Below are positions 1 to 63,997 of a DNA stretch of 64,000 bases, piece by piece; position 1 is the first letter of the stretch, and each line of letters starts with the position of its first letter. Both the position numbers and the translations under genes were made by a program. The notes under the pieces are model-generated. The model was not told the origin of the DNA and ran no database searches. It saw nothing but the letters and a program-made list of their open reading frames with translations. The stretch is from positions 124,001 to 188,000 of the IMG/VR virus record IMGVR_UViG_3300020186_000013. One strand, 5' to 3'.

Positions 1-510
1 GACACCCTTGGTCTCGATGTCGGGCGTCTGCCCGGTCGGCTGAGGGTTCAGCGGGCTATCGACGTGATCGTCGGCAGCGGAGCCGGCCGTCTGGACGGCA
101 CCCTCGGCCTTCTTGAGGCGGGCCTTCTTGTCGCGACCCTTCTTCTCGTCCGACTCGTCGGAGTCCGACGACTCGGCCTTGAGGTCCTGCTCGACCTTCT
201 TCATGAAGGGGTTCTCGGCCTTCTTGGAGAACTGGCCCAGGAACGCCGACGCCGTCTTGGCTTTCGCCTCGGCGGTGCTGTCGACGCTGATGGCACCCTG
301 CTCTTCCTTGACGTCCTTTTCGTTCTCCTTGGAACGAGCACCAGTCTGTGCGACTTCGGTGCGGTCGTCGACGTTTTTGACGGGGTGCTCGGTCTCACCG
401 CCGATGGAGCCCGCTTCGGTGTGGGCCTCCTCGGCTGACTTGGTGTGACCGACGCGGCTGAGAAACGATTCGATGGTGGCCATCGAACTCTGTGCGGATT
501 TGGTTGCCAT
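1..510 (-). CDS. Partial ORF (runs off the window start); charged low-complexity protein, possible scaffold or internal head protein
   Basis: Not in the ORF track. ATG at 510 with AAGGAG RBS, open to base 1 (MATKSAQSSMATIESFLSRVGHTKSAEEAH...); several K-x-A motifs; directly downstream of the putative prohead protease. Confidence 0.7.
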   Translation of the reverse strand, partial: MATKSAQSSMATIESFLSRVGHTKSAEEAHTEAGSIGGETEHPVKNVDDRTEVAQTGARSKENEKDVKEEQGAISVDSTAEAKAKTASAFLGQFSKKAENPFMKKVEQDLKAESSDSDESDEKKGRDKKARLKKAEGAVQTAGSAADDHVDSPLNPQPTGQTPDIETKGV

Positions 511-595
511 AGCTGGCAGCACTCCTTTGCTTCGGTTACCTGTGTTGGTCCGTATCGCCAGTCCCTGAGCGGACCTCAGCCACCGTTAGGAGGCG

Positions 596-2104
596 TCAGA
601 TCACCTGATTCTGGACGATACCCAGTCTCGCTGTCAACATGAACTCGTCGTCGAACGCCGCGATGCGTTGCAACGCCGCGACCTTGTAAAGGGCGTACGC
701 CCTCGCGAGTTCTTCCGCCTCGTGCTTGTCCGAGGCGGACTTCTCGCTCCAGATTCCAGTTTCTAGAACTGGCATCCGGTAGGACCGGATCGAGGCGAGC
801 TGGCAGCGGTGGTCGACCGCCGCCTTCTCCAAGGACAGCCCGTCCCGGATTTGCAACACCCAGCGGCGAAGCTGGGCCGATGCGGTTTTGGTGGAGAGAG
901 CAAACGGATTGTTCGTCAGCCGCCGCTCCAAGGACCCGTCAGTAATCATTCGCCCGTAAACGCCACGCAACGCCGCCGCTGCGGGGGCCACGAACTCGGC
1001 CTTCTTGGTGAGCTTCGCGAATTCGCGGAGCGGCAGGATGACCTTCTCGACCGCGAGTGCAGCCAGGGCCTCGGCACACTTCTGCGTGCCGGGTTCGCCC
1101 AGCATCGCAGGATCGACTTTTCCTTGCAACCGGTCGTCGAAGGCGAGCTTGTAGATGTCGTGTACCTGGCGGCGGTCCATGGTCCGCTCCAAGTGGTCGA
1201 GCCCTGCGGCCAGCTTCACCTGTTGGTCAACGTCCGTGGGGTTCATCCGGGAGAAGTAGTCGTCGGCCATCATGACAGCCAGGGGAGCAGAAACGCCCAG
1301 GTCCTCGGCCACCTTGCTGCTGTACGCCCCGTAGGTGCCGTCCCAGCGATCGGACGCAGCCTTGGTGAGGTAGTCCGCCCGATTAGCGTACGCGATGCGG
1401 TCCGCCGGACGGAAGACGTTACTCATGTCGAACCACGTCGGGCGGGGGTTGTCGACGTGCAGCTGGTGGACGTCGTTGCCGACCTTCACCAGGCGGCTCA
1501 GGTTGTCCTTGCACCCGCCGGCCTTGCAGCTGGCTTCTTTGCAGTAGTCGTCGCGGGTCCTGGCCTGATTGCCGCACCACGAGCACGTGTCGTACGGGAC
1601 GCGGCACGCCATCGACACGGCGATGTCCTCGCCACGTGCCAGCTTCTCCATCTCCTTGTCGGCGACCAGCCCGCCGTTGCGTTCCGCCGCCGACTTCTCC
1701 TTGTTCAGGAACGCCAGCAACTCGACGCGACGCATGGTCTCGTTGTACGCGGACTTCTTGATGATCCCGTACGACGCCTGGGGGTCCTTGTTCTTGTGGT
1801 TCCGATACCACCGGGCGAACTTCTCGAACGTGTTGTGGTACTCGCGGCAGGTGGCCTCCTTGAAGCCGTCGCCGTTGCGGTTGGGGCCGTACGCCTCAGT
1901 CGCCCCGTGGGACAAGACGTGGACAGGCTCCTCGTCCTTCGCCGCCTTGATGTTGTCGATGACATCGAGAAAGGCGTGGGACGCCCGCTTGACGAAGTCC
2001 GAGCGGTCGTTGCCGATGAGGCCACGACTGCCGATCTTAATCATGGACACGACGGGACCGTCGAAGTCCCAACCGTGCGGGCTGATAATCTTAACCATTC
2101 CCAT
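596..2104 (-). CDS. Putative prohead (capsid maturation) protease
   Basis: 502 aa. Motifs GPNRNGDGF, YRNH and VSMACRVPYDTCSWCGN resemble large-phage head maturation proteases (by recall); C-terminal half is rich in K-x-A. Confidence 0.6.
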   Translation of the reverse strand: MGMVKIISPHGWDFDGPVVSMIKIGSRGLIGNDRSDFVKRASHAFLDVIDNIKAAKDEEPVHVLSHGATEAYGPNRNGDGFKEATCREYHNTFEKFARWYRNHKNKDPQASYGIIKKSAYNETMRRVELLAFLNKEKSAAERNGGLVADKEMEKLARGEDIAVSMACRVPYDTCSWCGNQARTRDDYCKEASCKAGGCKDNLSRLVKVGNDVHQLHVDNPRPTWFDMSNVFRPADRIAYANRADYLTKAASDRWDGTYGAYSSKVAEDLGVSAPLAVMMADDYFSRMNPTDVDQQVKLAAGLDHLERTMDRRQVHDIYKLAFDDRLQGKVDPAMLGEPGTQKCAEALAALAVEKVILPLREFAKLTKKAEFVAPAAAALRGVYGRMITDGSLERRLTNNPFALSTKTASAQLRRWVLQIRDGLSLEKAAVDHRCQLASIRSYRMPVLETGIWSEKSASDKHEAEELARAYALYKVAALQRIAAFDDEFMLTARLGIVQNQVI

Positions 2105-2115
2105 TGCCTGTCTCC

Positions 2116-3402
2116 TTACTTGCCGGCGGGCACGAGCGGCTTGAGACCGCCCTCGGCTCGCATCTTCTTGAACATCTCTGCCATGGTCTCGTGGCGGACC
2201 TTGTCCTCGGTGGCTCCGCGTCCGAGGTAGCCGGCGGCGTCCAGGGCCATGGGTAAGCCGTACCCGAACACCCGTGCCGGCGTCGACAGGCCCTTGTTCA
2301 TCACATTCTTTTCGCGAAGAGCCCTAAACCCGATTGTGTTGACGTGCCGTACATCGGCCTTCGACATGGTTGCCGGGAGGCCCGGTGCCGACTTGGCGTG
2401 GCTCTTGATCAGAGCGTCCAGTTTTTTCAACGTGCCGGCTGACGCTGGGCCACTGGTCTGCACTTTGTCGCGGAACGCTTTCACGGCGTCTGGAACACCA
2501 GGGGTTGGCGGGGGCGTGAAGTTGTGTACGACCTTATCACCGCTCAAACCGCCCTTGCTGAATAAGTCACGAATGCCGCCGAACCACCGCCCGCCGCCGA
2601 ACAGACCCTGGTTGGTGTTCTGAAGGAGCTTAGCCCGCTCAACGGCGGCGTCTGGTCCGCCCATGAGGTTCTTGATCATCGCTTGCCGCTCAGGCGTGGC
2701 GAACATGGGATGGTCTTTACCGATCTGTTCTAGCCCGGTCATAAACATACGCGGATCGCGGCCCATACCGCGAGCGTTCTGATACATGGTCTTGATATCG
2801 TGCAGGCCCAAGAGCCCGCCACCGTACAACGAGAACGGGGCATTTTCAGCCAGCGTACTCTTGACGCCCCTGACCACGTTCAGAGCCTTTTCCGGCACCG
2901 TCGGCTTACTTGCCGCCTCGATCTTGGCGACCATGTCCGGATGATCAGCGACGTACTTCGGATCGATCGAGAACTTCTTTCCGGTCGTCAGGTCGGTGAA
3001 GACGCCAGGACCGTCGGTCGGCACCTTCGGACCGCCGCCGCCCATGCTCGGCCAGTATTTCTGAGCCGCCCCGATGCCGCCACCCAAGGCACCGCCGGCC
3101 AGGGCACCGGTCAAGGCACTGCCGAGCATGCCCTTACGCTTGCTCTCGGGCGTGCCGTCCTGGTTGCCCATGTAGTGACTGGCCCCGCCGGCCAACGCTC
3201 CGACGCCCCCGCCGAGAAGGGCCTTGCCGACGATCGGGTCCTTGGCGACGTCCCCCACCGAGGTCATGATGTCGGACAAGCCGAGGGCCTTTTTCTCGGT
3301 CCACGTGTGGCCCTCGGTGCGTACCTTCGCCGCCCGCTCGGCGAGGTAATCGACCGCTTGCTTGAGGGTGCCGTCAACCAAGAAGTCCAGAGGGAGCGTC
3401 AT
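2116..3402 (-). CDS. Hypothetical Gly-rich virion-like protein
   Basis: 428 aa; glycine-zipper segments (ALLGGGVGALAGGA); EKKA motif near the N-terminus. Confidence 0.7.
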   Translation of the reverse strand: MTLPLDFLVDGTLKQAVDYLAERAAKVRTEGHTWTEKKALGLSDIMTSVGDVAKDPIVGKALLGGGVGALAGGASHYMGNQDGTPESKRKGMLGSALTGALAGGALGGGIGAAQKYWPSMGGGGPKVPTDGPGVFTDLTTGKKFSIDPKYVADHPDMVAKIEAASKPTVPEKALNVVRGVKSTLAENAPFSLYGGGLLGLHDIKTMYQNARGMGRDPRMFMTGLEQIGKDHPMFATPERQAMIKNLMGGPDAAVERAKLLQNTNQGLFGGGRWFGGIRDLFSKGGLSGDKVVHNFTPPPTPGVPDAVKAFRDKVQTSGPASAGTLKKLDALIKSHAKSAPGLPATMSKADVRHVNTIGFRALREKNVMNKGLSTPARVFGYGLPMALDAAGYLGRGATEDKVRHETMAEMFKKMRAEGGLKPLVPAGK

Positions 3403-5008
3403 TGAGGATGCTCGTGTTAGGCGTTGAGATCCGGGTCGCCGTGATACCCTTCTCGATGTCGGTCAGTTCCTTCGTCTCGAACGGTTCCGTGTGCCCGGCG
3501 AGACGCTTCCGCAGAAGCGGCTTTAACGCCCCGGCGTGCTCGGCGGTCCGGGGAGCCAGCTGGGCGATTTCGTTGTACGCCGACACGACCTTATCCGGGT
3601 CGTGACCCGAGATGGGGTCGTCGGGGTCGGTCAACATCGAGTTCAGCATGGCGTGAGTCTTGATCTTCCGCAACTCGTTCTGGTGCTGCGGGTCCTCCAG
3701 GTCGAGCCACGCATCCTCGATCAGATCGTTCTTGGTCTTGGGGTACTCGCCCAGGCCGCGACTGATCATCGACCCAATGGCCGAAGTGCTAATCTGGGAG
3801 AGGGCTCGCTTCTCGGCTCCCGGTGTGACCATAGCTTTTGCGGCCTGGTCCTTGATCTCCTCGATCGCCGCCAAGCGGTCTTCGTCCTCCGGGTCCGGCT
3901 CATCGTCTTCGATCGGGCCGCGAGCGGCAGGACCGCCGTGTTCGCCCTGGCCCATGCGGTTGAGGACCACGCCACCGCCGATGTCGCCGGCAGCGATAAC
4001 CCCGGCGTCGATCAGGAGGCTCATCGGGGTGTGGGCAGCTTGCTTGGTCCCGCCCAGCAGGTTCCAGCTACTTGCGGAAGTAGACTGGTTTGGGGCCGTG
4101 GCCCTGCTGGACGGTTCCGCGAAAGGGACGAGGTGTCCCGAAACCTGGTCGAAGTAATCCTGTGCCTCCTTCGCCCACACACGGGCCTGGTTCACGTCCC
4201 GAGCCGCCTTGATGGCGGCGACGACGATCGTGAACGGCTCGTGGTGCAGGTCGAACGCAACCTTCTGGACGGGCGTCTTGTCGGCACCAGGCTCCCGCAA
4301 CTTGGCCCGATCGTACGCCATCTTGCACAGATCGACAGCAAGGGGACCGTAGTACGTCTTGGCGGCGTGTTCGACCTGGGCGTACGGCAGACGGTAGCAC
4401 GCTGCCTGCTTGAGGTACGAGGTCAGGTCGGCCACGTGGTGACGCAGCTTGTCTTCGCAGTCGGCCGCGTGCCGGCGTGACTCATCGGCCGCGTTCTTGG
4501 CTCGCTGGAACTTGCCGTAGTCCCGCTTGAGCACCGTGGCGGCTTCCGGTTTGGGTTTGGACACCGGCAGCACCTTGCCAGCCTTGGCGTCCGCCGCCGC
4601 CTTCTCCATGAGCGGGGTGTCCCGCCGCTGGGCTGCGAGCTTCCGCTCGTCGGGCAGCCACGTCGGCGGGGCGTTGTAGTCGGCGTCGAAGGCGACCTTG
4701 TGCATGGCCTCCTTCTTCGTGTCGACCTTCTCCGGGTAGACGGAGGAGACGATCTTGGCGGGGTCGCACAGCGGGTAGCTGGCGAGCTTGTCGAGGATCG
4801 ACGTGTTGGCCCGCCACTGGCCGAGCTGTCGCCCCGTGTTGTAGGCCCGGCCCAGCATGGTAATCATGCCGGGGCCGAACTGTTCGTCGCGGGCCACCTT
4901 CTCGACCGCCTGGTCGGGACTCATGTTCTTCTGGTCGACGTAGTCCACCGCCGTCTTGATTGCACTCAAGAGGCGGCGTTCGTCGCTGCTGGCAATTTCT
5001 TGTGGCAT
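3374..5008 (-). CDS. Hypothetical protein, probable virion/head component
   Basis: ORF track 3374..5023; GGAGG RBS favours the MPQE start at 5008; many K-x-A motifs. Confidence 0.75.
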   Translation of the reverse strand: MPQEIASSDERRLLSAIKTAVDYVDQKNMSPDQAVEKVARDEQFGPGMITMLGRAYNTGRQLGQWRANTSILDKLASYPLCDPAKIVSSVYPEKVDTKKEAMHKVAFDADYNAPPTWLPDERKLAAQRRDTPLMEKAAADAKAGKVLPVSKPKPEAATVLKRDYGKFQRAKNAADESRRHAADCEDKLRHHVADLTSYLKQAACYRLPYAQVEHAAKTYYGPLAVDLCKMAYDRAKLREPGADKTPVQKVAFDLHHEPFTIVVAAIKAARDVNQARVWAKEAQDYFDQVSGHLVPFAEPSSRATAPNQSTSASSWNLLGGTKQAAHTPMSLLIDAGVIAAGDIGGGVVLNRMGQGEHGGPAARGPIEDDEPDPEDEDRLAAIEEIKDQAAKAMVTPGAEKRALSQISTSAIGSMISRGLGEYPKTKNDLIEDAWLDLEDPQHQNELRKIKTHAMLNSMLTDPDDPISGHDPDKVVSAYNEIAQLAPRTAEHAGALKPLLRKRLAGHTEPFETKELTDIEKGITATRISTPNTSILNDAPSGLLG

Positions 5009-5028
5009 AGGGCGGTCCTCCATAACCG

Positions 5029-6063
5029 CTACTTGGTGTCCGTCGGCAAGGCCCGGACCGGCGACGGCAGTCGCAGGCTCTCCAGGTCGTCCAACCCCTT
5101 CACGTTCAGGCCGGCAGCGAGTGCCCCGACCTCACCGTCCCGAAGTTCAGCCGCCATCTTATCGTAGACCTTCACCTTCGGGCTCAGGAACTCGTTCGTC
5201 TCGTCACCGATCGAGTACACGTTCTCGATCTCGGACATCAGCCCGCCGATGCTCTGCTCGATCTGGTTCTTCTTCTGGTCGAGGGTCTCCTCGGACTTCT
5301 CGATCTCCATCAGCCGGGCGTGGATGCCGAACAACTCAATGACGTTGAACTTGTTGATCTCGAACGTCCGGACCGCCTGGCTGGAGCGGGCACGCAACGT
5401 CGTCGCCCAGTGGTCATCCAGGTACTTCGCCATCTCATCCTGAGAGTTGCAAATCTTCCCCGTCTGGAAACTTTGCAGCATGAACTCCAGCACGATCGGC
5501 CCGGCGAAGTACGCGAACATCTTGATCGAGGCGTCGAGGAAGGGGCGGGCGATGATCTCCTTACTCCACGGCATGACCGGGTTGTCGGCGTCGTGGTGCG
5601 ACGGGACCAGGCCGAAGTTCCTCTGCATCGCCGGAATCAGCACGTTCTTGGTGATGTAGTCCCGGTACTTCAGCCGGTCGCGGACATTGAAGAACAGCTG
5701 CTCGTAATACTCGATCGTGTTGGGGAGGATGCCGGTCGCGTTGTGGATCTGGTCGTTGCTCTGGCCCGCCAGGATGCGGGCCTGGATCATCATCGCGGTG
5801 TCGGACTCCTCCAGCTCCTTCTCGTGGATCTTGTAGGCGTAGAACATGTCGATGTTCCTCGCGAACAGCTCGTCGAGGTGGTCCTCCTGGTCGGGGGCGT
5901 TGTATTTGAGGATGAAGTTACGCCCGTCTCGAACGTACTTGTCGTCCGACCGGCCCGGCCTACGCGGGGTCGGCTTGTGCCCGGCCAGTACGAGTACACG
6001 TTCCCACCGCCAGTCCGGGCGGCGGAAGAAGCTGTACGTCTCCATCGCGTGGTGCAGATTCAT
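5029..6063 (-). CDS. Hypothetical protein
   Basis: Start MNLHH at 6063 overlaps the upstream stop (ATGA); typical GC3-rich codons. Confidence 0.75.
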   Translation of the reverse strand: MNLHHAMETYSFFRRPDWRWERVLVLAGHKPTPRRPGRSDDKYVRDGRNFILKYNAPDQEDHLDELFARNIDMFYAYKIHEKELEESDTAMMIQARILAGQSNDQIHNATGILPNTIEYYEQLFFNVRDRLKYRDYITKNVLIPAMQRNFGLVPSHHDADNPVMPWSKEIIARPFLDASIKMFAYFAGPIVLEFMLQSFQTGKICNSQDEMAKYLDDHWATTLRARSSQAVRTFEINKFNVIELFGIHARLMEIEKSEETLDQKKNQIEQSIGGLMSEIENVYSIGDETNEFLSPKVKVYDKMAAELRDGEVGALAAGLNVKGLDDLESLRLPSPVRALPTDTK

Positions 6064-6542
6064 TGCATGTCCGTCGAGGAACCGATGTTCACGCAGAACT
6101 CCCAGCCGTCGGTCGTCGTGATCACAACCCACAGGACGCGGTTGTTGGCTTGGAGGCGGTCCGAGACGCCGGTGATCGGCGTCTGTTGGAGGGGGTCCTG
6201 GCTGAAAAAATAGTGACCAAAGCCGCCGGGCGACTCATCAGCGTCGTACCGGGCCACGCCGAGTGTCCCGGCGATCGTCGGCTGCACGACAAACAGCTCC
6301 CGCGACAGGGCGTTGCCGTCCGCGTCCGTGACCGGCGTGTTGAAGGCCGCTTCCCGCCGGTTGTAGATGTCGACCGCGAAGCCTCCGACGCCGGGGGAGT
6401 CGGTCCGGCAGATGACGATCTTGTTGAGCAGCACGCGGCTGGGGACCTTGAGGCCAATGATGGCCTTGCCCGAGATGCCGCCGAATTCGGCGTCGCCGAT
6501 GACGATGCCGCCGCGTGGTTCGATTTCGTGGGGGACACCCAT
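6060..6542 (-). CDS. Hypothetical protein (beta-strand-rich, possibly structural)
   Basis: 160 aa; GGAG RBS; coupled to the next gene. Confidence 0.7.
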   Translation of the reverse strand: MGVPHEIEPRGGIVIGDAEFGGISGKAIIGLKVPSRVLLNKIVICRTDSPGVGGFAVDIYNRREAAFNTPVTDADGNALSRELFVVQPTIAGTLGVARYDADESPGGFGHYFFSQDPLQQTPITGVSDRLQANNRVLWVVITTTDGWEFCVNIGSSTDMQ

Positions 6543-6553
6543 TGCACTCTCCG

Positions 6554-9160
6554 TTAGTTACGGGCAGCTTCCTGCACACTCGGGTCGGACGGGTTGGCCA
6601 TGTTACCGAACTGGCCGTCCATACCGCCACCGACTTGCTTCTCCTTGAGGAAGAGGCAGACGTCGCCCATGACCTCGAAGGCGTTGCGGAGGGAGTCTTC
6701 GAGTTCCGGCAAGTCCTGCTTGCCGTAGCGGTCCTCGAACTCCTCTTGGTGCCAGTAGAACATGAACAGGATGCGGCCCAGCTTGTCCAGGGCCTTCATC
6801 AGATCGCCCAGGTAGCGATCGACCAGGCTGTCCTGGCGGACGGCTTTGAGCATCCCCGAGATCATTGCCGTGTCGAAGACCTCTTTCTGGCCCGCCGCCC
6901 CGGCCTCCTGGGCCGTCTGCATCGCCTGCTGGTCGGGCTGGTAGAACGGGTCGTAGATCGTCGGGTCCGTCTTGGCGGACATCAGTTCGGGGGCCTGATG
7001 GAACTCCTCCTGCGGGTAGATCGCGTTGACCTGTCCGTTGCCGACCCGCTCCATGCCTTGCTCGGCCGGCGGGAACGCGGGAGCCCCAGGACCACCCGAC
7101 AACGCAGACTGAGTCGGCCCGCCGAAGCCCTCGGCGTACTTGATGCGGTAGGTCGCGGACCCCTTCTTCTCGGCCTGCCGCATGATGGCACGGGCCGACG
7201 CCTCGTCGGTGCCGTGGTCACGGACCAGGCTGATGAACGCCGCCTTCTTGGTCATCCGGTGCTCGCGGCCATTCGCCTTGACGTACACGTCGCAGCCCCG
7301 GTCGAGGACGCGGATCGCCGCCGTCTTCTCGAACAACATGAGCTGCACGTCGTTGATGTTGCCGGGGTTGATCGGCCGCTCCTCGGTGCCGCTGCCGGGG
7401 TCGGACTCCGACATCGAACAACACGCGAGCAGGCCGTCCTCCTCACGCTTCTTCGGCTTGGGCGGGTCCTTGAGCTTGAAGACCTTGAAGTTCTTGGGCA
7501 CGTTCAGCTCGCCACCGACGGACCGCAGCCCGGACCCTTCACGCGGGTTGATGTGCAACAGGACGTCATACGTCGAGACGTACTCCTCGCCCGACAGCCA
7601 CCGGTTGTTACTGTGCGTCGGCGGCAGCCAGGTCGGGCGATCCTTGCCGTACGAACAGGCGTCCTTGAAGTCGACCCGGTAGGTGTCGTCGTCGACCTTC
7701 TTGCGGACGCGGAACGGCGTGGTGCCCGCCCCGTTCTCGCCAACGGCCAGGTAATGGCCCTCCTGCTCCAGCGTGTCCGAGTCCGATACGCCCTTCCACC
7801 ACTTCTGGAAGTCCGGGCGGTCGGGCTTGGCGTTGGGCTTCACCCACAGGTTGGAGGCGTGGATGTTCACCCAGTTCTTCGGGTCCGACAGGCGGATCAC
7901 GGTGGCCCACTGCTCCCGGCCTCGGTTGGTCTGGGGGTGCATGATGACCAGCATCTCGTCGAACGAGCCCGGCTTCTCTAGGACGTCGAAGACCCCGGTC
8001 TCTCCGGGGTTGGTGAGTTCCATGCGGACCTGGGTGTCGTACACCTGGCTGACGCCCTGGGAGTCCCGCTTGTCCTTGATGAGGACGGTGTCCTTGAGGA
8101 GCTTCTCCCGCTCGTCGGAGTCCAGCTCCTCCTTGTTCTGGGTGAAGCCGCCGGGGGCATCCATGTCGACCTTGTTCTCGGTCGCCCGCTTGCCCATGGC
8201 CCCCGCGAGGGCGTCGTAGACGATGATCTGGAGGGCACCGCTCTTGATCGGGTGCACGGCCGGCAGCGGGTCGGCGACGAGGGACCCGCCAACGCGGCGG
8301 TCGGCCGCGACCTTGGTTCGGACCGGGTCGACCTTCTTGATGAGTGACTTCGCGTCGGCCAACATGTCCTGGCCAAGTTTCAAGAAAAAGTCCCTGCCGT
8401 AGAACTTCTCGAAACCGGCTTTTAGGAGCGGGTGTCGCTGGGTCAACTCGAACGCCCCCTCGGCGAGCTTAATGTTCTCGCCCAAGAACCGCGTCAGAGT
8501 GAGCCGCTCGTCGAGGCCAGCGTGCTTCTGGAAGATCTTGTCGCTCTTGGTCGCGGCGGCACCAGCGAACGCCAAGAACGGGAGAGCCCACTCCTGGATG
8601 CGGGGCCGATAGTGGTCCGAGCCGTACTTCGACGACGTCGGCGGGTGCGACAGGCGATAGATGTCCGGCGGGACACCGCCGAGCTGGTAGGTGTCCTTGG
8701 GCGAAGCCTCGCCCAGGACGTGGGGCTTGCGGGAGATCAGGTAGTTGACCCAGTTCTCCTTCATCGGCACGAAGGCGTCCTGCTTCTTGACGTACAGAAG
8801 CTCGTGGCCTTTCAAGTCGCCGTTCAAAAAGAACACCGGGGCGTAGAGCCACTGGTCGCCGACCTTGAACCCGAAGACGCCCATGGCCTTCGTGTTGTCC
8901 TCGTTCCGGTCGACGAGCTGAAAGCCGATGATGTAGTCGATGAGCCGGGGACTCTTGTCCTTCAGGTAGGCGTAGGCGAGCGAGGAGAAGGCTTGCTCGA
9001 AGCCCGACTCCTGCTCGCCGCCGATGGACGCCTGCTTGATCTTGGTGCGGTCGAGGTCCCGGACGGCCTGACGCAGGGGCGTCTTGGCCGACTTGGACGC
9101 CCAGTACCAGCCCTGGTCCGTGGATCGCTTCTCGAATTTGGTCGTGGCGGTAATGCTCAT
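6554..9160 (-). CDS. Large hypothetical protein, probable virion structural protein
   Basis: About 868 aa from MSITAT (GGAG RBS); strong codon bias; K-x-A motifs (IKQAS, TKVAA, EKTAA, IKYAE). Confidence 0.8.
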   Translation of the reverse strand: MSITATTKFEKRSTDQGWYWASKSAKTPLRQAVRDLDRTKIKQASIGGEQESGFEQAFSSLAYAYLKDKSPRLIDYIIGFQLVDRNEDNTKAMGVFGFKVGDQWLYAPVFFLNGDLKGHELLYVKKQDAFVPMKENWVNYLISRKPHVLGEASPKDTYQLGGVPPDIYRLSHPPTSSKYGSDHYRPRIQEWALPFLAFAGAAATKSDKIFQKHAGLDERLTLTRFLGENIKLAEGAFELTQRHPLLKAGFEKFYGRDFFLKLGQDMLADAKSLIKKVDPVRTKVAADRRVGGSLVADPLPAVHPIKSGALQIIVYDALAGAMGKRATENKVDMDAPGGFTQNKEELDSDEREKLLKDTVLIKDKRDSQGVSQVYDTQVRMELTNPGETGVFDVLEKPGSFDEMLVIMHPQTNRGREQWATVIRLSDPKNWVNIHASNLWVKPNAKPDRPDFQKWWKGVSDSDTLEQEGHYLAVGENGAGTTPFRVRKKVDDDTYRVDFKDACSYGKDRPTWLPPTHSNNRWLSGEEYVSTYDVLLHINPREGSGLRSVGGELNVPKNFKVFKLKDPPKPKKREEDGLLACCSMSESDPGSGTEERPINPGNINDVQLMLFEKTAAIRVLDRGCDVYVKANGREHRMTKKAAFISLVRDHGTDEASARAIMRQAEKKGSATYRIKYAEGFGGPTQSALSGGPGAPAFPPAEQGMERVGNGQVNAIYPQEEFHQAPELMSAKTDPTIYDPFYQPDQQAMQTAQEAGAAGQKEVFDTAMISGMLKAVRQDSLVDRYLGDLMKALDKLGRILFMFYWHQEEFEDRYGKQDLPELEDSLRNAFEVMGDVCLFLKEKQVGGGMDGQFGNMANPSDPSVQEAARN

Positions 9161-9217
9161 GACTCCATCCGTGGATTCGGCTGTGTGTCTGCCATTCCTT
9201 CGGCACCGCACCGATGG

Positions 9218-14422: not shown

Positions 14423-14437
14423 CCGTGCCCCTAAGAT

Positions 14438-14455
14438 CTAGAAACCGGAATCTAG
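14438..14455. promoter_or_regulatory. 18-bp pseudo-palindrome CTAGAAACCGGAATCTAG (recurrent motif)
   Basis: Intergenic, 16 bp upstream of the beta'-C start; near-copies at 24329, 34896 and 57877, and inside genes. Confidence 0.55.
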
Positions 14456-14477
14456 CGGCCCGCAACGTGCGGGCCGC
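14455..14477 (-). terminator. GC hairpin (10-bp stem, 3-nt loop); possible terminator or processing site
   Basis: GCGGCCCGCA-ACG-TGCGGGCCGC just after the 14487 stop; weak U-tract. Confidence 0.4.
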
Positions 14478-14486
14478 ACGAGGTGC

Positions 14487-15389: not shown

Positions 15390-15390
15390 G

Positions 15391-15672
15391 TCATTCTCCT
15401 GGCTTCGGCCCCGCAATCAGTCGGGCACCGGGCGGTGGTTTGGGAAGTTCCAACCGGTCGCAGACGACCGTCTCGCCGATGCCGAGGTTCCTCAGCATGC
15501 GGTTGAAGTCGTCCTGGCCGACGATGGAGATGGCCTGGCTCCGGCCACCTCCGTACTCCGCAGCGACGCCGATCGGGGTGCCGGTGTCCTGGCGGATCAG
15601 GATCTGATTGACCTGCAAGACCAGTGGCCTGCTGTTGCCGATCCCGTCCTTGAGAATCAACTCTACGATCAC
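15391..15672 (-). CDS. Hypothetical protein
   Basis: 93 aa; fills the gap between neighbours; GTG start. Confidence 0.65.
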   Translation of the reverse strand: MIVELILKDGIGNSRPLVLQVNQILIRQDTGTPIGVAAEYGGGRSQAISIVGQDDFNRMLRNLGIGETVVCDRLELPKPPPGARLIAGPKPGE

Positions 15673-15683: not shown

Positions 15684-16436
15684 CTACGCCGCCGGACGCC
15701 GACGAAGGCTGGCGATCATGGCGGCTTTGTTCATGGTCTCTTCCAGGCCCTTGTGGGAGTACGCCACGCCCGCGTCGGCAGCCGCCTTGCCGCCGCCTCC
15801 GGGTGGTGCACCGCCCATGTCGGGCTGCCCGCCCATCGGGGGCATGCCGCCGGGGGCACCCATGGCCGAGTCCTGCTGCCCGCCGGACTGCTGCTTCGCG
15901 GCCATCTGGGTCAGATCGGTCGGCGTGGCGATCATCTCGCTGGCCGGGATCTTGACACCGAGGGCGTCCGCAATGCGGGCGATCATCTTCGACATCTGCA
16001 TGATGGCGACGTTGACGTCGATCTTGGGCTTGATCTGCCCGGCCATGTTCGAGCCAGACTGAGCCGACCCGCCCTGGACGGCCTGGAGGATCTGGTCCAT
16101 CTTGGCCGTCATCGCCGGGTCGCCGCCACCCCCGCCGCCCGGAGGCGGCATCGGAGGCATGCCCATCATGGACGGGTCCATCGGAGGAGCACCGCCGCCG
16201 GACGGGTCACCGCCGGGAGGCGGGCCACCCATCATAGACGGGTCCATCGGAGGGGCACCGCCGCCCATGGACGGATCGCCGCCAGGAGGAGGGGCACCAC
16301 CGCCGCCGGTCATGGAGGGGTCACCACCGGGCACGAACGCGAGTTTGGTGAAGTTCGCCGACATCTTGCGGCGGGCTTCCTTCACCAACTCGGGGTTACA
16401 CAGGTGGTCGCCGTAAGGCGTCATCAATTGGCTCAT
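15684..16436 (-). CDS. Pro/Gly/Met-rich, probably disordered protein
   Basis: 250 aa; repeated GGDPSM and GAPPMDPSMMG units; TKLAF motif. Confidence 0.75.
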   Translation of the reverse strand: MSQLMTPYGDHLCNPELVKEARRKMSANFTKLAFVPGGDPSMTGGGGAPPPGGDPSMGGGAPPMDPSMMGGPPPGGDPSGGGAPPMDPSMMGMPPMPPPGGGGGGDPAMTAKMDQILQAVQGGSAQSGSNMAGQIKPKIDVNVAIMQMSKMIARIADALGVKIPASEMIATPTDLTQMAAKQQSGGQQDSAMGAPGGMPPMGGQPDMGGAPPGGGGKAAADAGVAYSHKGLEETMNKAAMIASLRRRPAA

Positions 16437-23264: not shown

Positions 23265-23657
23265 TTACAGGAACATCCGCCCGCCACGACTCTGCTTAGC
23301 CTGCTGCAACCGCCGAATCGCCTGCTGCCGGCGGACCTTGGCAGCTTCGGTACGGTAGGTGTCGATGACCTCGCGGTCCTTGATGTCGGCGACGTCCTTG
23401 TCGGTCACGTCCGTGGCCTTGGCCAAACCGGCCCCGGCGATGCCGCCCAGGATCGGCGGGGCGGCAAGGGCCAGAGGCACCCCGACGCTGCCGACGAGCT
23501 GCGTCAACGCCGTGGCGGCGTCACCGACGGCCCCGAACAACGCGAGCTTGTCCATCGCGGCCTTGACCGCCCCCGCCATTTGTTGGGCGGTCATCCCGTG
23601 CTCGACGCACCGGGCCACGAACCCGACCTTGAATGCTTCCCGTGCAGTCAGTGGCAT
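23265..23657 (-). CDS. Hypothetical virion-like protein
   Basis: 130 aa; AGGAGG RBS; VKAAMDKLALF; hydrophobic Gly-rich segment. Confidence 0.75.
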   Translation of the reverse strand: MPLTAREAFKVGFVARCVEHGMTAQQMAGAVKAAMDKLALFGAVGDAATALTQLVGSVGVPLALAAPPILGGIAGAGLAKATDVTDKDVADIKDREVIDTYRTEAAKVRRQQAIRRLQQAKQSRGGRMFL

Positions 23658-24880: not shown

Positions 24881-26020
24881 CTAGTGAAACAGTTTCGGCA
24901 CAACTGACCCGATGAGGCCGAGAGCGGCGACACCCTTGCCGATTTGGCTGAAGGTGTAGGGCGTGCCGACCACCTGGTTTAGCACCGCTCCGACCCAAGC
25001 CCCAGTAAGGTAATCTTTCCCCGCGTTCATTGCTAGTTGACCTAGCTGCCCGCCCGTGACGTGTCCGGGACTGCTCCGCTCGTCAGGCAGTTGCTGGGCC
25101 GCGTACATGGCCCCCATCGTCGTCGCGGCGAGGTCCGGTGACGCCCCCGACTCCCACAGCGTCTGACCGAGGGCGTTGATGTTGACGTCGTACGGCGTGC
25201 GGTGCCGATGGTCGCCGCCGCCGAACATGTCCCCGAACGCCCGCTTTACAAACGAGTCGCAAGCACCCTTGTAAGCATCGCCCACCTGTGGGGCGAGCAG
25301 GTGCTTGTTCGAGAACTCTTGGCTGTACTCTTCGGTCTGTGGGCGGCTGGTGCCGGCGAGTCGGCTTTCCAGGAGACTCGGCCGATCGAACTTAGGCGAG
25401 TCCGACAGCTGCTCGATCGGTGGGGTATCCAGCGGGTGCGGGTCGAGGAGGGAGTGGCCGGTCGCATGATTGGCGTACGCCCAGGCAGCACCGGGAGCCG
25501 CACCCGCCAGAGCACCGAGAATGGCTCCCGTCCGCTTCAATTTCTTGCCGTACTTGTGCGGCATTAACGCTTCAGCCAGAGAGCCAACACCATAACCAAG
25601 ACCACCGCCCACCAATCCGGTCGTAAGCATCGCAGCCAAAGGACTCGGGGCGTTAGGGATTCCACCGGGGTAGGTTCCTGGGAAGAAGTTGAGGAGTTCA
25701 CCGGCCCGCCGCAGCGTCTCGCTGTAGGCGACCTTGACCCAATCGCCACCCGTGGCCTCATCCCGAGTCAGGTAAGTCTCCCGCACGTGATCGGCACCGA
25801 CCGCCCGCTCGGCGGCACGCTTACACCGCAGGGCATCAGGCCGATGGAAGTCGATAGACGTACGCGGGAACAGGGCGACCTGATCGCGGTCCGGGCTATA
25901 GAAGTAATCGACGGGGTACTTGGTGAAGATCGACGCTGCCGCCTGCTTCACGTCCCAGCACGGTGCCGCCGTCTTCACGACCCAGGCATCCAGGCGGGGG
26001 ATCACGTCTTCCCAATCCAT
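24881..26020 (-). CDS. Gly-rich virion-like protein
   Basis: 379 aa; VKTAA, VKQAA, CKRAA, VKVAY and VKRAF motifs; glycine zippers. Confidence 0.75.
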   Translation of the reverse strand: MDWEDVIPRLDAWVVKTAAPCWDVKQAAASIFTKYPVDYFYSPDRDQVALFPRTSIDFHRPDALRCKRAAERAVGADHVRETYLTRDEATGGDWVKVAYSETLRRAGELLNFFPGTYPGGIPNAPSPLAAMLTTGLVGGGLGYGVGSLAEALMPHKYGKKLKRTGAILGALAGAAPGAAWAYANHATGHSLLDPHPLDTPPIEQLSDSPKFDRPSLLESRLAGTSRPQTEEYSQEFSNKHLLAPQVGDAYKGACDSFVKRAFGDMFGGGDHRHRTPYDVNINALGQTLWESGASPDLAATTMGAMYAAQQLPDERSSPGHVTGGQLGQLAMNAGKDYLTGAWVGAVLNQVVGTPYTFSQIGKGVAALGLIGSVVPKLFH

Positions 26021-30783: not shown

Positions 30784-31331
30784 TCCGAGTCCGCCTTGCG
30801 GGTGCCGTTGCGACCGAGAACGCCGCGACGGCGAACCGCACACGTGATGTGGAAGTCGTACTCGCCCCCTTTGGGGCGAGACGACAGCCCGTAAGACCGC
30901 CGCAGCTTCTGAAGTTCCGGTGAGTGGATCGTTGTAAACCACACCTTCTCCACGCCCGGCCACCCGTCAGGCTCCACTTCCTTCAGCCTCCCCAGCGTGT
31001 ACGTGAACTGCTTGCCACGCTCCGTGATCTTGTCGACGCCGCCGATCTCCTCGACCTCTTCCTTGCGGATGACCGAGATGTGAGCGTTGAACGGCTGGTC
31101 GCCGTGGCCCGGCGGCAACTCGACGCCCGGCTCCCTCATAGACTTGAAGATGCCTCGCACCATGGCGTTGGGCACGGTGAGCATGATCCAGCCGCCGGGC
31201 GTCGCGTAGAGCGTCCCCGCCAGGTTGTACACCGGGACAGGGACACCAGCCTCCTTGACAAACCGCTGGCCCAGGATGAAAGCAACCCGCTGGTGCACAG
31301 CGGGGCCGTTCGACACAGATAGCAGCGACAC
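30780..31331 (-). CDS. 2H phosphoesterase
   Basis: Two HxS/T motifs: AHISV and FHITC. Confidence 0.75.
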   Translation of the reverse strand: MSLLSVSNGPAVHQRVAFILGQRFVKEAGVPVPVYNLAGTLYATPGGWIMLTVPNAMVRGIFKSMREPGVELPPGHGDQPFNAHISVIRKEEVEEIGGVDKITERGKQFTYTLGRLKEVEPDGWPGVEKVWFTTIHSPELQKLRRSYGLSSRPKGGEYDFHITCAVRRRGVLGRNGTRKADSD

Positions 31332-61789: not shown

Positions 61790-61801
61790 TTCGTCCCTCG
61801 G

Positions 61802-63997
61802 TTAGGAGTGGCCCTCGCCCGTCAGACCCTGAGCGGCTTGACGGGCTTTGTTAGTCTGGTGATGGAGTTCATCGCGTGCGGGTGCTTGACCGCCAGTGAG
61901 CTTGTTCCAAGCGTCGGAGATGGCTCCGGGGTTCTGCTGGATGCGGGGATAAGCCGCCAAGCCCGCACCACCCGCCATTATCAGCGGGTTACCAGTCAGC
62001 ATCCCGAGCCCGCCGAGACCCATACCGCCCAACGCCATTCCCCGCTGCCCGCCCGTCATGTTCTCGGTGTCGTACCCCAGAGCTTTCAAGAACGGGTTAC
62101 CGACGTTACCCACCCGCTGGCCGATCTGGTACCGGATCTCCTGGGTCGGGTCGAACTGGCCCTCCTCGTTGAGGAAGCCACGCTCGTGCATGTACTTGTC
62201 CGCGTCCCGTGCTATGTTCGCCTGCAACGTCGGGTAGTCCTGCTCGATGAAGGTCTTCTTCAGGTCGTTGATCTTGTTGTCGACGTCGCCGGCGACCTGG
62301 TCATGCAGAGAACCATAGGCCGTTCCGCCCAAAGCAGCAGCCCCCGTCCCGAGCGTCAACCCCTGCCCCGCCCGGAAGCCGAGCTTCCTGGCCCCGGACA
62401 AACCGGCGGCACCGCTCTGGTATGCACCTTTGCCCCACAGGAAGTGCCCGGCACGACTAAACGGGTCCATGACGCCCTGACCCATCCGCGTCATCGCGTT
62501 CGACGGAGCCTCCAGGGCGGTCGTGACACCCCGACTCAGCATGCTAGGTTCCACGGGCGTCGTCCCCGCCGCTCGTGCCGCTGCGTTCGTCCGAACCAAA
62601 GACGAGTTGCGTGCAGCAGCGACGTTGCCCCCCAGGCCAGTCATCAAACCGGCTCGACTCAGGCGACGGCTCCACTTCTCAGGGTCGTTCGGGTCACCGT
62701 TACCTGTCATGTCGCCGAGCTGGTCCATGCCGAACCCGATATTGGTCCCGGCAAACGACTGAGCCAACGGACGCCACAGCGTCTGACCCGTCGCCGAGTT
62801 GCGGAATCCTCGGTTGCCCATCAACGCACCGCCGGCAATGCCCAGCGGATTGATCCTCCAACTTCGCCAGCCGCCCTCGGGTTGGCCAGTGGCCGGGTCA
62901 ATCCCCGGACTACCAAGGGTGAAACTACCCTCCCCGCCGCCCATCGCGTTGGCCGTCATGTTGCCTTGCAAGCCACCGAAGGTCATCTGCATGCCACTAC
63001 CGGACATGTTCGCCCGCGTTCGACCGGCGGCAGTCGCCGCACGGGGGAGCGTGGCAGCCTCGGTGATGTTGAGACCCGAGTTGTCTTTACCGTGTGTTGC
63101 CGGACGCGGAGACACGATCTTCGGACCCATACCCGGCGTCGGAGCACCCCGTGTGCCGGTCCGCATCAAGGGCTTGGTCGACGACGCACCAGGACGGACC
63201 AGTCCGCCCAGCCACTTCGCACCCGACACCAGGGTCTCCTTGCTGGGCCAGACGGCGTCCTTCTCGAACGCCTGCTTCTGCCCGAACATGCTGCCTAGGC
63301 CCTGGGCCATCTGCTGCCCGCCCATCATCGACCAACCCGACGGGGCGTACTGCGACGCCAGCTGCTGAGCCGACCCGGCAGCCTGCTCATTGGCCACCTC
63401 GGACGTTGCCTTCATCGACTTCGGACCGGTGATGGACATCGGCGGCGGGGCCAGCGACGCCGCCCCGGTATTCTTGTTGACGCTGACCTCACCCATCCCC
63501 TGCGGGTGTGTCGCCTGAGCCACCTGGGTCTTCTGACTCACCTGATTCTTGCCCGTCGGCAGCGTACCGGGGGACGGAGCGGTCGGTGCGGTCTTGGGCT
63601 TCTCCTGCTTGCCGCCCACCATCTTGTCGAAGCTGTCGAGGAACGCGAGCTTCTTGAGGCCGGCAGCAAGCTCAGCGTGCACCTGAAGGCCGTAGTTGGT
63701 CCCGACCCGGTCCACGGCGGACTTGATCTGCGACAGACCGAGGCCCTTCTGACGACAGTGGTCAAAGAACGACTCGGCGAACGGCGTCATGTCCATGCCG
63801 CCTTTGTCGAACCCAGGTAGTCGCGGCCCGGTGTACGGGACCGGAGGAACAGGTTGTTGCTGCCCGAAGTTGGCAGGCAGACGCGACCCGGTGTACGGGA
63901 CCGGAGGAACAGGTTGTTGCTGCCCGAAGTTGGCAGGCAGACGCGACCCGGTATACGCCGGCACAACGTGCTGTGGCACCGGCTTAGCCTGGGGCAT
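61802..63997 (-). CDS. Large Gly-rich virion-like protein (may start beyond the window)
   Basis: 731 aa, frame open to the window end; KKLAF and QKQAFEKDA motifs; glycine zippers. Confidence 0.7.
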   Translation of the reverse strand: MPQAKPVPQHVVPAYTGSRLPANFGQQQPVPPVPYTGSRLPANFGQQQPVPPVPYTGPRLPGFDKGGMDMTPFAESFFDHCRQKGLGLSQIKSAVDRVGTNYGLQVHAELAAGLKKLAFLDSFDKMVGGKQEKPKTAPTAPSPGTLPTGKNQVSQKTQVAQATHPQGMGEVSVNKNTGAASLAPPPMSITGPKSMKATSEVANEQAAGSAQQLASQYAPSGWSMMGGQQMAQGLGSMFGQKQAFEKDAVWPSKETLVSGAKWLGGLVRPGASSTKPLMRTGTRGAPTPGMGPKIVSPRPATHGKDNSGLNITEAATLPRAATAAGRTRANMSGSGMQMTFGGLQGNMTANAMGGGEGSFTLGSPGIDPATGQPEGGWRSWRINPLGIAGGALMGNRGFRNSATGQTLWRPLAQSFAGTNIGFGMDQLGDMTGNGDPNDPEKWSRRLSRAGLMTGLGGNVAAARNSSLVRTNAAARAAGTTPVEPSMLSRGVTTALEAPSNAMTRMGQGVMDPFSRAGHFLWGKGAYQSGAAGLSGARKLGFRAGQGLTLGTGAAALGGTAYGSLHDQVAGDVDNKINDLKKTFIEQDYPTLQANIARDADKYMHERGFLNEEGQFDPTQEIRYQIGQRVGNVGNPFLKALGYDTENMTGGQRGMALGGMGLGGLGMLTGNPLIMAGGAGLAAYPRIQQNPGAISDAWNKLTGGQAPARDELHHQTNKARQAAQGLTGEGHS
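63827..63957. repeat. 60-bp tandem repeat (2 copies plus partial), in frame (YTGSRLPANFGQQQPVPPVP)
   Basis: Lines 63841 and 63901 are identical for 52 nt. Confidence 0.9.

Follow-up and report, generated by a model that had tools for sequence, protein, structure and literature searches.

The DNA stretch analysed here (the window; 64 000 nucleotides, positions 124 001 to 188 000 of IMG/VR record IMGVR_UViG_3300020186_000013) belongs to a 208-kb phage genome. It carries genes of a head-assembly module, including a putative prohead protease, scaffold-like proteins and glycine-zipper proteins, several of which are rich in the short motif Lys-x-Ala (K-x-A). The genes and sites listed here are all encoded on the minus strand:

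1..510, minus strand: 5' part of a 493-aa gene that continues to the left of the window, to position -971; the product resembles a scaffold or core protein, with 14 K-x-A against 4.7 expected and a long Gly/Pro/Met/Asp low-complexity region.
596..2104, minus strand: predicted prohead protease gene (502 aa), with a T4 gp21-like catalytic domain (residues 1-233), a disordered linker (residues 231-259) and a helical C-terminal domain rich in K-x-A; 18 K-x-A against 4.3 expected.
1796..1798, minus strand: His103 codon, the candidate catalytic histidine.
1613..1615, minus strand: Ser164 codon, the candidate catalytic serine, in the invariant S-M-A/G-C motif.
1511..1606, minus strand: cysteine cluster (C167, C174, C177, C188, C193, C198) inserted just after the candidate catalytic serine; it may bind metal.
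1982..1990, minus strand: K39-R-A41, a conserved site just upstream of the protease fold and a predicted N-terminal self-processing site.
1355..1363, minus strand: K248-A-A250 (context L-T-K-A-A|S-D), in a low-confidence linker at the end of the catalytic domain; the predicted site of release of the C-terminal domain.
734..742, minus strand: K455-S-A457 (context E-K-S-A|S-D), in a low-confidence loop of the C-terminal domain.
2116..3402, minus strand: glycine-zipper protein (428 aa, 14.7% Gly); an N-terminal leader carries K14-Q-A (window 3355-3363) and K37-K-A, and the body has only one further K-x-A.
3374..5008, minus strand: 544-aa protein with 15 K-x-A against 5.5 expected, all in the N-terminal 74% (the last at residue 400), the C-terminal part being free of sites; K37-V-A lies at window 4892-4900.
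6554..9160, minus strand: 868-aa multidomain protein, a homologue of the abundant Arash virion protein gp218 and not the portal; 11 K-x-A against 5.6 expected, with K42-Q-A44 (window 9029-9037) following a variable 40-residue leader.
16338..16346, minus strand: K31-L-A, an N-terminal site of the 250-aa Gly/Pro/Met low-complexity protein encoded at 15684-16436.
23556..23564, minus strand: K32-A-A, an N-terminal site of the 130-aa protein encoded at 23265-23657, followed by a Gly/Ala-rich hydrophobic segment.
25940..25948, minus strand: K25-Q-A, an N-terminal site of the 379-aa glycine-zipper protein encoded at 24881-26020 (6 K-x-A against 2.0 expected).
31248..31256, minus strand: K26-E-A, an N-terminal site of the 2H phosphoesterase encoded at 30780-31331; this enzyme may be packaged into the head with a cleavable leader.

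Over-representation of K-x-A

The initial annotation listed 22 K-x-A peptides in otherwise unrelated ORFs, and all of them are present in the ORFs named. Its observation, an enrichment judged by eye, is confirmed. There are 152 K-x-A in the window proteins against 107 in whole-protein shuffles (z 4.6), and 409 against 332 in the whole genome (z 4.6). K-x-A ranks second of the 400 a-x-b pairs in this genome. The signal is specific to this spacing, as KA, KxxA, KxxxA and AxK are all near 1.0, and to these residues, as RxA is at 0.97, KxS at 0.83 and KxG at 0.72. It survives shuffling within blocks of 10-40 residues, so local composition does not explain it (global and local shuffles give z 3.9-4.7). 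The signal acts at the amino-acid level: codon choice at the sites matches codon choice elsewhere, and the DNA pattern appears only in the reading frame.

The same analysis was extended to about 80 related loci. In 74 distinct loci (GC 39-70%), K-x-A is the top pair, far above every other gapped pair, with 4974 observed and 2536 expected (1.96 times expectation, z 48), although orthologues are not independent samples and z-scores pooled over loci overstate significance. The ratio of observed to expected is 1.5-2.8 in every one of the 80 loci, while KA, KxxA and AxK stay near 1. The extended consensus is [L/F/M]-[E/I/V/T]-K-x-A-[S/A/E]-[D/E].

The excess is concentrated in a few proteins. About eight carry it at 2.4-4 times expectation, including the 596-2104 product. 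Six head-module proteins of the window have 68 K-x-A against 23.0 expected (Poisson p 2e-14). The six head-module orthologue groups lie at 2.4-4.0 times expectation (the 1-510 group at 2.4), whereas neighbouring genes lie at 0.6-1.3. The 118 homologues of the 596-2104 product have a ratio of 3.9. An unlinked 390-aa gene family carries 11-18 sites per protein, with a ratio of 3.9 across 120 homologues. The same carriers recur in four complete relatives, and they share no detectable homology with one another. In four of the six groups, orthologue sites that do not align with any site in this genome exceed the whole expected count on their own, indicating that sites turn over while density is kept.

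Outside the heavy carriers, the first 60 residues of the other window proteins have 33 K-x-A against 17.4 expected (p 5.5e-4), while the rest of those proteins have 81 against 80.5. About 117 of the 161 K-x-A in window-encoded proteins (about 73%) are expected by chance, so most single examples are uninformative taken alone. The controls that had been named in advance are at or below expectation: nrdJ has 2 against 3.6, and the glycosyltransferase and sugar cluster 6 against 8.0. The RNA polymerase is also at chance level, and orthologues of its beta' subunit lie below expectation, at 0.69.

A predicted protease and conserved boundary sites

The N-terminal domain of the 596-2104 product has the T4 gp21 protease fold: T4 gp21 (PDB 5jbl) matches at Z 10.8 with 150 of 164 residues aligned, and the Foldseek probability is 1.0. 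By sequence alone the hhalign match to T4 gp21 is not significant; its low-probability register places His103 at T4 His85 and Ser164 at T4 Ser140. Both residues are invariant in an alignment (A2) that includes Salmonella phage Arash, Vibrio phage D69, Bacillus phage G and Rhodococcus phage E3; a third catalytic residue was not identified. The six cysteines are invariant columns in another alignment (A1), and C174, C177 and C188 are invariant out to phage G and E3.

Conserved K-x-A sites flank the catalytic domain. K-x-A sits at the aligned columns of K39-R-A41 in 94% of 35 orthologues, against 0.40 identity in the flanks, and K39 is invariant in A2. K248-A-A250 is conserved in 100% of orthologues, against 0.20 identity in the flanks; pLDDT is below 50 over residues 231-259, and L-x-K-[AV]-A-[SN] is kept in Arash gp222, D69 and phage G gp19. 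At K455-S-A457, K-x-A sits at the aligned columns in 0.63 of orthologues and within a few columns in 0.89, against 0.17 identity in the flanks, with pLDDT below 50 over residues 450-457. However, eight K-x-A lie inside the folded protease domain and several lie in predicted helices, and a purely structural role for some of them cannot be excluded.

A single K-x-A marks the boundary between a variable leader and the conserved body in two other proteins. Of 42 orthologues of the major capsid protein, 41 have K-x-A in the first 50 residues (47 observed, 10.8 expected), near residue 30, and K29 and A31 are the only conserved residues in the variable leader. The mature part is four-fold depleted (11 against 44.7 expected). 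The phage G capsid protein lacks the site, even though K-x-A is enriched in the head module of that phage. In the 868-aa protein, for which no fold match was found, K42 is invariant and A44 nearly so, and the C-terminal part has 10 against 28. In the 544-aa protein, K37-V-A is conserved in all nine orthologues; in orthologues the N-terminal part has 486 against 146 expected and the C-terminal part 12 against 33.

The glycine-zipper protein 2116-3402 shows the same split. Its 34 positional equivalents have 69 K-x-A against 22.5 expected in the first 60 residues, followed by a Gly-zipper-rich body with 34 against 91.1 (p 6e-12). N-terminal K-x-A is present in both detectable orthologues of the 250-aa protein and in both of the 379-aa protein. 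For the 130-aa protein, in which a transmembrane-like segment spans residues 54-72, it lies at residues 30-40 in all four complete relatives, and for the 2H phosphoesterase (Pfam 2H-SAK match at 1e-12) at residues 16-26 in all four complete relatives.

As a positive control, the same statistic was applied to T4 gp21 and gp22. It returns LxE and IxE, the known T4 cleavage motif, as the top two pairs.

Interpretation and comparison with known systems

We consider it likely that K-x-A is the recognition motif of the phage's own prohead (capsid maturation) protease, the 596-2104 product, which would be a serine protease with the T4 gp21/herpesvirus assemblin fold. In this view, the protease is built into the procapsid and frees its catalytic domain by cutting at residues 39-41 and 248-250. 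It would then cut a single N-terminal leader on the major capsid protein (L-E-K-Q-A|I-D, residue 31), on the 868-aa virion protein (residue 44) and on several cargo proteins, including the glycine-zipper proteins and the 2H phosphoesterase. It would also cut many sites in scaffold- or core-like proteins, which would be chopped into small pieces and lost, and its own C-terminal domain. By analogy with every characterized member of this fold, K would sit at P3 and A at P1, with cleavage after Ala; S/A is preferred at P1' and D/E at P2'. The enrichment of the motif, its specificity, distribution and conservation, and the protease fold are established by the analysis. Cleavage itself, the bond that is cut and the fate of each substrate are inferred, as no experimental N-terminus, semi-tryptic peptide or in vitro cleavage exists for any member and the virion proteomics of Arash, the closest cultured phage, did not analyse processing.

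The interpretation in the initial annotation is partly supported. Its core, an Ala-directed code of the prohead protease that removes propeptides, is the best-supported explanation, although all of the evidence is indirect. It was extended too far to internal examples, namely LKKAD in the RNA polymerase subunit, DKTAA in 28997, and KKLAF and QKQAFEKDA in 61802, which appear to be background. It had also proposed that glycine-zipper segments after the sites form ejection or membrane-spanning proteins; support is limited to the one gene position 2116-3402, and ejection or membrane insertion, like the marking of virion-internal proteins, remains conjecture.

It is possible, though unlikely, that K-x-A is a protease site with the scissile bond elsewhere, for example after Lys (P1 = K, P2' = A), or that the cut is made by a host protease or a second phage protease. 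Sequence statistics cannot place the bond, and the two positions preceding K are also informative (L/F/M, then E/I/V/T), which is compatible with a register shifted towards K. HK97 cuts its capsid protein after a Lys. On the other hand, all characterized enzymes of this fold read P3-x-P1 and cut after the second fixed residue, and the preference of SPN3US and herpesvirus for Ser at P1' matches the S/A peak directly after Ala. The motif also flanks the protease's own domain and travels with this protease lineage: it is present in the clade, Arash, D69 and phage G, and absent around the more distant Rhodococcus phage E3 homologue.

A less likely alternative is a structural or binding motif that is not cut, such as a helix-start or packing signature of an all-helical scaffold family, or a contact motif docking scaffold and cargo onto the capsid interior. 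Many sites in the protease C-terminal domain lie at or near predicted helix starts (e.g. residues 341, 427 and 454), the heavy carriers appear largely helical or disordered, and several sites inside the folded catalytic domain are conserved. However, there is no i+3, i+4 or i+7 periodicity, only the i, i+2 spacing being enriched, and the carriers are not detectably homologous. A single conserved site at the boundary between leader and body in unrelated folds (capsid protein, 868-aa protein, 2H enzyme, Gly-zipper proteins) does not fit a fold signature. Three- to four-fold depletion in mature bodies suggests that the motif is harmful there, as a cut site would be, and the true cleavage code of T4 leaves the same footprint. 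Chance or composition, in a proteome rich in Ala and Lys, probably accounts for several of the individual examples but is refuted as a general explanation by the shuffling controls.

Prohead proteases with a two-residue code are already known; the specificity proposed here is new. The T4 protease gp21 (MEROPS S77, [L/I]-x-E|) has the same catalytic fold, with His and Ser at matching positions and the two-residue P3-x-P1 pattern. As here, its gene sits beside scaffold-like genes and the capsid protein gene, sites are dense in the scaffold (gp22 has 16 [LI]xE against 5.7 expected) and in the protease itself, and the capsid protein carries an N-terminal propeptide site. In our system the predicted P1 is Ala and P3 is Lys, where T4 has Glu and Leu/Ile. 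The protease is 502 aa, with a large helical C-terminal domain that is itself full of sites and the six-cysteine insertion after the candidate catalytic Ser, and there is no significant sequence similarity to gp21.

The giant-phage proteases phiKZ gp175 and SPN3US gp245 ([S/A/G]-x-E|, Ser at P1') offer a second comparison (PMC5694885, PMC10052503). Like our phage, these are jumbo phages with virion-associated multisubunit RNA polymerase. As proposed here, the protease is thought to cut off its own C-terminal part, and many head proteins carry N-terminal propeptides, some with several sites. The P1' Ser and the beta-branched or acidic P4 seen here parallel the logo measured for SPN3US gp245 (PMC10052503). 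The specificity differs, K-x-A here and A-x-E there, and these are unrelated phage lineages; the closest cultured relatives of our phage are Arash and Vibrio phage D69, and its capsid protein is a small 312-aa phage-G-type protein.

Herpesvirus assemblin (MEROPS S21) has the consensus [V/L/I]-x-A|S. The T4 gp21 fold is regarded as homologous to assemblin (Cheng et al. 2004, listed in PMC10052503), and the predicted code shares with it Ala at P1, a small Ser/Ala at P1' and the P3-x-P1 spacing. No sequence or direct structural match to an assemblin chain was obtained, only T4 gp21 scoring. Here P3 is Lys instead of an aliphatic residue, and herpesviruses use two sites per precursor, not dozens.

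Genome context and distribution of K-x-A

The virus record containing the window (bases 124,001-188,000) is a single sequence of 208,145 bp with 63% GC, and nearly all of the genes in the window lie on the minus strand. From low to high coordinates the window holds the following groups of genes.

About 1-10,400: head-assembly module
10,565-21,772: multisubunit RNA polymerase genes
26,104-28,431: class II ribonucleotide reductase
Next in order: a NUDIX-kinase fusion and a 2H phosphoesterase (30780-31331)
About 36-56 kb: sugar-modification cluster with four or more GT2 glycosyltransferases, a sulfotransferase, a UDP-glucose dehydrogenase and a radical-SAM enzyme
Last in order: tail-like genes

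No cultured phage is close. The nearest are Salmonella phage Arash and Vibrio phages D69, D181 and D148, at about 31-37% protein identity, and hundreds of metagenomic relatives lie on contigs of 180-240 kb. Pfam found no family at E <= 0.01 for any of the ten head-module proteins tested, and PHROGs matched only the predicted protease, to a family of unknown function, with marginal hits for a few others.

The initial annotation had reported, by eye, a recurrent K-x-A motif in many otherwise unrelated ORFs, and this observation proved to be real: every peptide it cited is present in the ORF named. Gene calling on the whole genome gave 225 ORFs, in which K-x-A occurs 409 times against 332 in whole-protein shuffles (z 4.6). 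In proteins lying fully inside the window it occurs 152 times against 107 (z 4.6). Among all 400 a-x-b pairs it ranks second, after PxP. Only this spacing is enriched; KA, KxxA to Kx7A and AxK in every spacing are near 1.0. Shuffling within blocks of 10, 20 or 40 residues leaves z at 3.9-4.7, so local composition is not the cause, and helical periodicity was likewise rejected. Codon choice at the sites is the same as elsewhere and the DNA pattern occurs only in the reading frame. The constraint therefore acts on the protein, and a DNA-level motif was rejected as the cause.

The excess is not spread evenly but is carried by a handful of proteins, listed below. Two small proteins encoded just left of the window also carry an excess.

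K-x-A counts in the main carriers (window coordinates unless stated; product; observed; expected).
596-2104; predicted protease, 502 aa; 18; 4.3
3374-5008; 544 aa; 15; 5.5
-971 to 510; 493 aa; 14; 4.7
6554-9160; 868 aa; 11; 5.6
genome 54,544-55,716, plus strand; 390 aa; 15; 4.4
window +72,579 to +74,438; 619 aa; 16; 7.2

The 390-aa gene (L002:2544-3716 in our locus numbering) is a lone plus-strand gene among minus-strand genes, outside the window. It is a real gene, with a GC3 of 0.87 and a ribosome-binding site, and it probably encodes a scaffold or core protein far from the head module. With these eight proteins removed, the rest of the genome has 299 K-x-A against 280 expected. One exception remains: the first 60 residues of window-encoded proteins have 33 against 17.4 (p 5.5e-4), whereas the remainder of the same proteins has 81 against 80.5, and N-termini encoded outside the window have 35 against 33. 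Controls that had been named in advance are at or below expectation (nrdJ, 2 against 3.6; the glycosyltransferase and sugar cluster, 6 against 8.0); the RNA polymerase subunits, grouped with these controls, have 21 against 16.4. About three-quarters of the K-x-A in the window are therefore background, and internal examples such as LKKAD, DKTAA and KKLAF carry no weight taken alone.

Two K-x-A-bearing proteins contain long low-complexity runs built from Gly, Pro, Met and Asp, with units such as G-G-D-P-S-M and G-G-G-A-P-P: the product of 15684-16436 (residues ~36-110, window 16106-16331) and the product of -971 to 510 (residues ~318-455, encoded left of the window; L084/L001 in our locus numbering). 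In the product of 9218-10408, residues ~100-140 contain a near-exact tandem duplication of a ~19-residue Pro/Val/Ser-rich unit, followed by a glycine-zipper-like segment. The unit reads G-P-V-S-A-P-T-R-P-V-P-N-V-T-R-S-A-V-P.

Conservation and position of the sites in relatives

A scan for relatives of the 596-2104 product returned 80 loci with 10-kb flanks. In every one of them, across GC from 39 to 70%, K-x-A is 1.5-2.8 times expectation, while the control spacings stay near 1. Pooled over 74 distinct loci (1488 ORFs, 443,520 residues), the count is 4974 against 2536, and the z of 48 is more than twice that of any other pair at gaps 0-3. Only Lys is enriched at the first position (RxA 0.97, QxA 1.07) and only Ala at the third (KxS 0.83, KxG 0.72). 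The flanks give the consensus [L/F/M]-[E/I/V/T]-K-[Q/T/V, not G/P/D/N]-A-[S/A/E]-[D/E]. A position matrix trained only on relatives finds 37 sites scoring 3 or more in this genome against 5.5 expected; nine sites scoring 2 or more fall in the unlinked 390-aa protein, which was not in the training set.

The ortholog groups split into two classes. Six head-module groups lie at 2.4-4.0 times expectation, whereas the neighbouring capsid protein, the 5029-6063 product and the RNA polymerase beta' lie at 1.0, 0.94 and 0.70. The 120 homologues of the 390-aa protein carry 11-18 sites each, an observed-to-expected ratio of 3.9, and the 118 protease homologues also give 3.9. These sequences are related, so the pooled z-scores overstate independence. 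Even so, orthologue sites that do not align with any site in this genome exceed the whole expected count on their own in four of six groups, at 1.2-2.0 times; site density is therefore maintained while individual sites turn over. Four complete relatives (219-235 kb) show the same set of heavy carriers. Searches for related loci with single proteins found no relatives: the 390-aa protein returned only a near-identical copy and the RNA polymerase subunit returned nothing. Relatives were reached instead through searches for homologous proteins and through genome searches.

The 312-aa protein encoded 2.2-3.1 kb downstream of the protease gene is the major capsid protein homologue. It matches phage G gp27, whose capsid structure is solved, by BLASTP at 4e-10, and corresponds to the annotated Arash capsid protein, gp226. 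The leader site reads L-E-K-Q-A-I-D-A in this phage, and the K-x-A of Arash gp226 is K27-E-A29. In 41 of 42 distinct capsid orthologues there is a K-x-A within the first 50 residues (47 against 10.8 expected). K29 and A31 are the only conserved positions in a variable leader, and the conserved body starts directly after them; the remaining ~265 residues hold 11 K-x-A against 44.7 expected. A 25-residue stretch of this protein (residues 85-108; capsid gene at L001:16895-17833) recurs at 88% identity at the C-terminus of an unrelated 161-aa ORF product encoded at window 46564-47049 (BLASTP 2e-9).

The 868-aa protein has a variable 40-residue leader, then the K42-x-A44 site (K42 invariant, A44 nearly so) in a low-confidence segment, then conserved sequence. 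By profile comparison it corresponds to Arash gp218, an abundant virion protein that is not the portal; Arash's portal is a different gene, and the 868-aa protein is not similar to the phage G portal. An Atlas search, an AlphaFold2 model (pLDDT 62) and a PDB fold search gave no functional assignment. Five of the 11 K-x-A sites in this model fall in low-confidence linkers against about 4 expected, which is not informative. The 544-aa protein concentrates its sites in the N-terminal 70% (486 against 146 in orthologues) and avoids them in the C-terminal 30% (12 against 33), and the 868-aa protein does likewise (10 against 28 in the C-terminal part).

The gene just upstream of the protease gene, 2116-3402, encodes a glycine-rich protein with GxxxGxxxG runs. 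In the same position in relatives, 44 of 48 distinct products have K-x-A in the first 60 residues. For the 34 longer than 240 aa, the leader holds 69 against 22.5 and the body 34 against 91.1 (p 6e-12). N-terminal sites are also kept in all four complete relatives for the 130-aa protein (23265-23657) and the 2H phosphoesterase, and in both detectable orthologues of 15684-16436 and 24881-26020. The RNA polymerase subunits are encoded at 10565-14401 and 18656-21772, and the homologous subunits of Arash are among its most abundant virion proteins (PMC10585845). K-x-A is depleted in the beta' orthologues (107 against 154 expected, a ratio of 0.69), which fits a polymerase that is packaged and must survive the protease.

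The predicted prohead protease

Residues ~70-250 of the 596-2104 product resemble annotated prohead proteases of Rhodococcus phage E3 and Gordonia phage Pupper, and phage G gp19. There are roughly 900 protease homologues. An AlphaFold2 model (mean pLDDT 81) has a compact domain over residues 1-233, a disordered linker over 231-259 and a helical C-terminal domain. The only convincing structural match is T4 gp21 (5jbl), with a Foldseek probability of 1.0 and a VIA-align Z of 10.8 (150 of 164 residues aligned, rmsd 3.2); the next hit scores Z 4.1. An HK97-type (Pfam Peptidase_S78) or ClpP-type protease is not supported, since there was no Pfam family at E <= 0.01 and a PDB sequence search with the protease profile found nothing.

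H103 and S164 are invariant from this clade out to Arash, D69, phage G and E3. An hhalign alignment that is not significant by itself nonetheless puts them exactly on His85 and Ser140, the catalytic residues of T4 gp21. The third catalytic residue is a second His in T4 and the herpesviruses; no further invariant His was found here, and outgroups keep a His after C188 where the clade of the window has E, A or T. Six invariant cysteines (C167, C174, C177, C188, C193 and C198; residues 167-198, window 1511-1606) form an insertion directly after the candidate catalytic serine. Three of them are conserved out to phage G and E3, and they may form a metal-binding module inside a gp21-fold protease. 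Two metagenomic homologues (P0025 and P0032 in our protein numbering) are about 876 aa and carry intein or homing-endonuclease domains (PF14528, PF13403); the prohead protease gene therefore hosts an intein in some relatives.

Two K-x-A sites bracket the domain. K39-x-A is conserved in 94% of orthologues. L-T-K248-A-A|S-D is conserved in 100%, although its flanks are only 20% identical, and it sits in the disordered linker. The form L-x-K-[A/V]-A-[S/N] persists in Arash gp222, D69 and phage G gp19. K-x-A-rich scaffold-like genes lie on both sides of the protease gene. In Arash the protease is gp222 and the heavy carriers are gp220, gp223 and gp225. K-x-A is the top a-x-b pair around this gene in Arash (60 against 35) and phage G (locus L087, genes gp7, gp19 and gp21; 47 against 25), and second in D69 (70 against 46). 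However, it is not enriched around the more distant E3 homologue, and the phage G capsid protein gp27 has no K-x-A at all and lacks the Lys at the conserved leader site.

Interpretation and comparison with other prohead proteases

The pattern has four parts: dense sites in scaffold-like proteins and in the predicted protease, one site at the junction between leader and body in the capsid protein and putative cargo, depletion in the parts that persist, and co-occurrence with a gp21-fold protease. This is the footprint of a prohead-protease cleavage code. As a control, the same pair statistic applied to T4 gp21 and gp22 returns LxE (13 against 4.7) and IxE (10 against 3.6) as the two top pairs, which is the experimentally known gp21 code; the scaffold gp22 carries 16 against 5.7, the same magnitude as seen here. 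By the same test, no a-x-E pair ranks above TxE (7th in this genome) or ExE (top in Vibrio phage D69), which points to a variant specificity and not to the absence of a code.

All characterised enzymes of this fold read P3-x-P1 and cut after P1, and SPN3US additionally prefers Ser at P1' (PMC10052503). Herpesvirus assemblin cuts [V/L/I]-x-A|S. The most economical reading is therefore K(P3)-x-A(P1), cut before S/A(P1')-D/E(P2'). We consider a cleavage code likely with fairly high confidence, and cutting after Ala specifically somewhat more probable than not. The counts establish the enrichment and where it lies, whereas cleavage itself and the bond that would be cut are inferred from sequence and from a predicted fold. 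The published Arash proteomics reports only coverage (86.6% for the capsid protein), without peptides in its supplements, and never mentions a protease. A complex prediction of the protease domain with the capsid leader peptide scored 0.06, below the mark at which it would count as evidence either way.

The interpretation made in the initial annotation is thus partly supported. Its central inference, an Ala-directed code of the prohead protease, stands as the leading hypothesis; the reach of its list of examples was overstated, and its suggestion that the glycine-zipper segments form ejection or membrane-spanning proteins remains conjecture.

A broader reading is possible but doubtful on present evidence. 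In this view, a large, mostly uncultivated clade of about 180-240-kb phages, with Arash, Vibrio phages D69, D181 and D148, and possibly the megaphage G as distant cultured members, would use one Lys-x-Ala address-and-cut code to load and process a whole set of head cargo. The cargo would include glycine-zipper (possibly membrane-active) ejection proteins and enzymes such as a 2H phosphoesterase. The Ala-P1 / Ser-P1' specificity would be shared with herpesvirus assemblin, implying that small-P1 specificity is ancestral or recurrent in the gp21/assemblin superfamily, and virion-internal proteomes could be read from sequence alone in metagenomic phages.

Prohead-protease codes are known by experiment for only a few phage lineages, all of which cut after Glu. 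A different code that can be read from sequence would show that specificity in the gp21/assemblin fold is more plastic than the T4, phiKZ and SPN3US examples suggest, and closer to the herpesvirus Ala|Ser rule. It would also give a cheap way to predict propeptides, scaffold proteins and packaged cargo in hundreds of uncultivated jumbo-phage genomes where homology searches return nothing, and would supply precise predictions for the cultured relatives Arash and D69. In the literature searched, which omits most subscription journals, we found no paper describing a Lys-x-Ala capsid maturation motif, or any processing analysis for Arash, the Vibrio phages or phage G. The fold and the logic are those of T4, phiKZ and SPN3US; the specificity differs, and it is shared by a large, mostly uncultivated clade.
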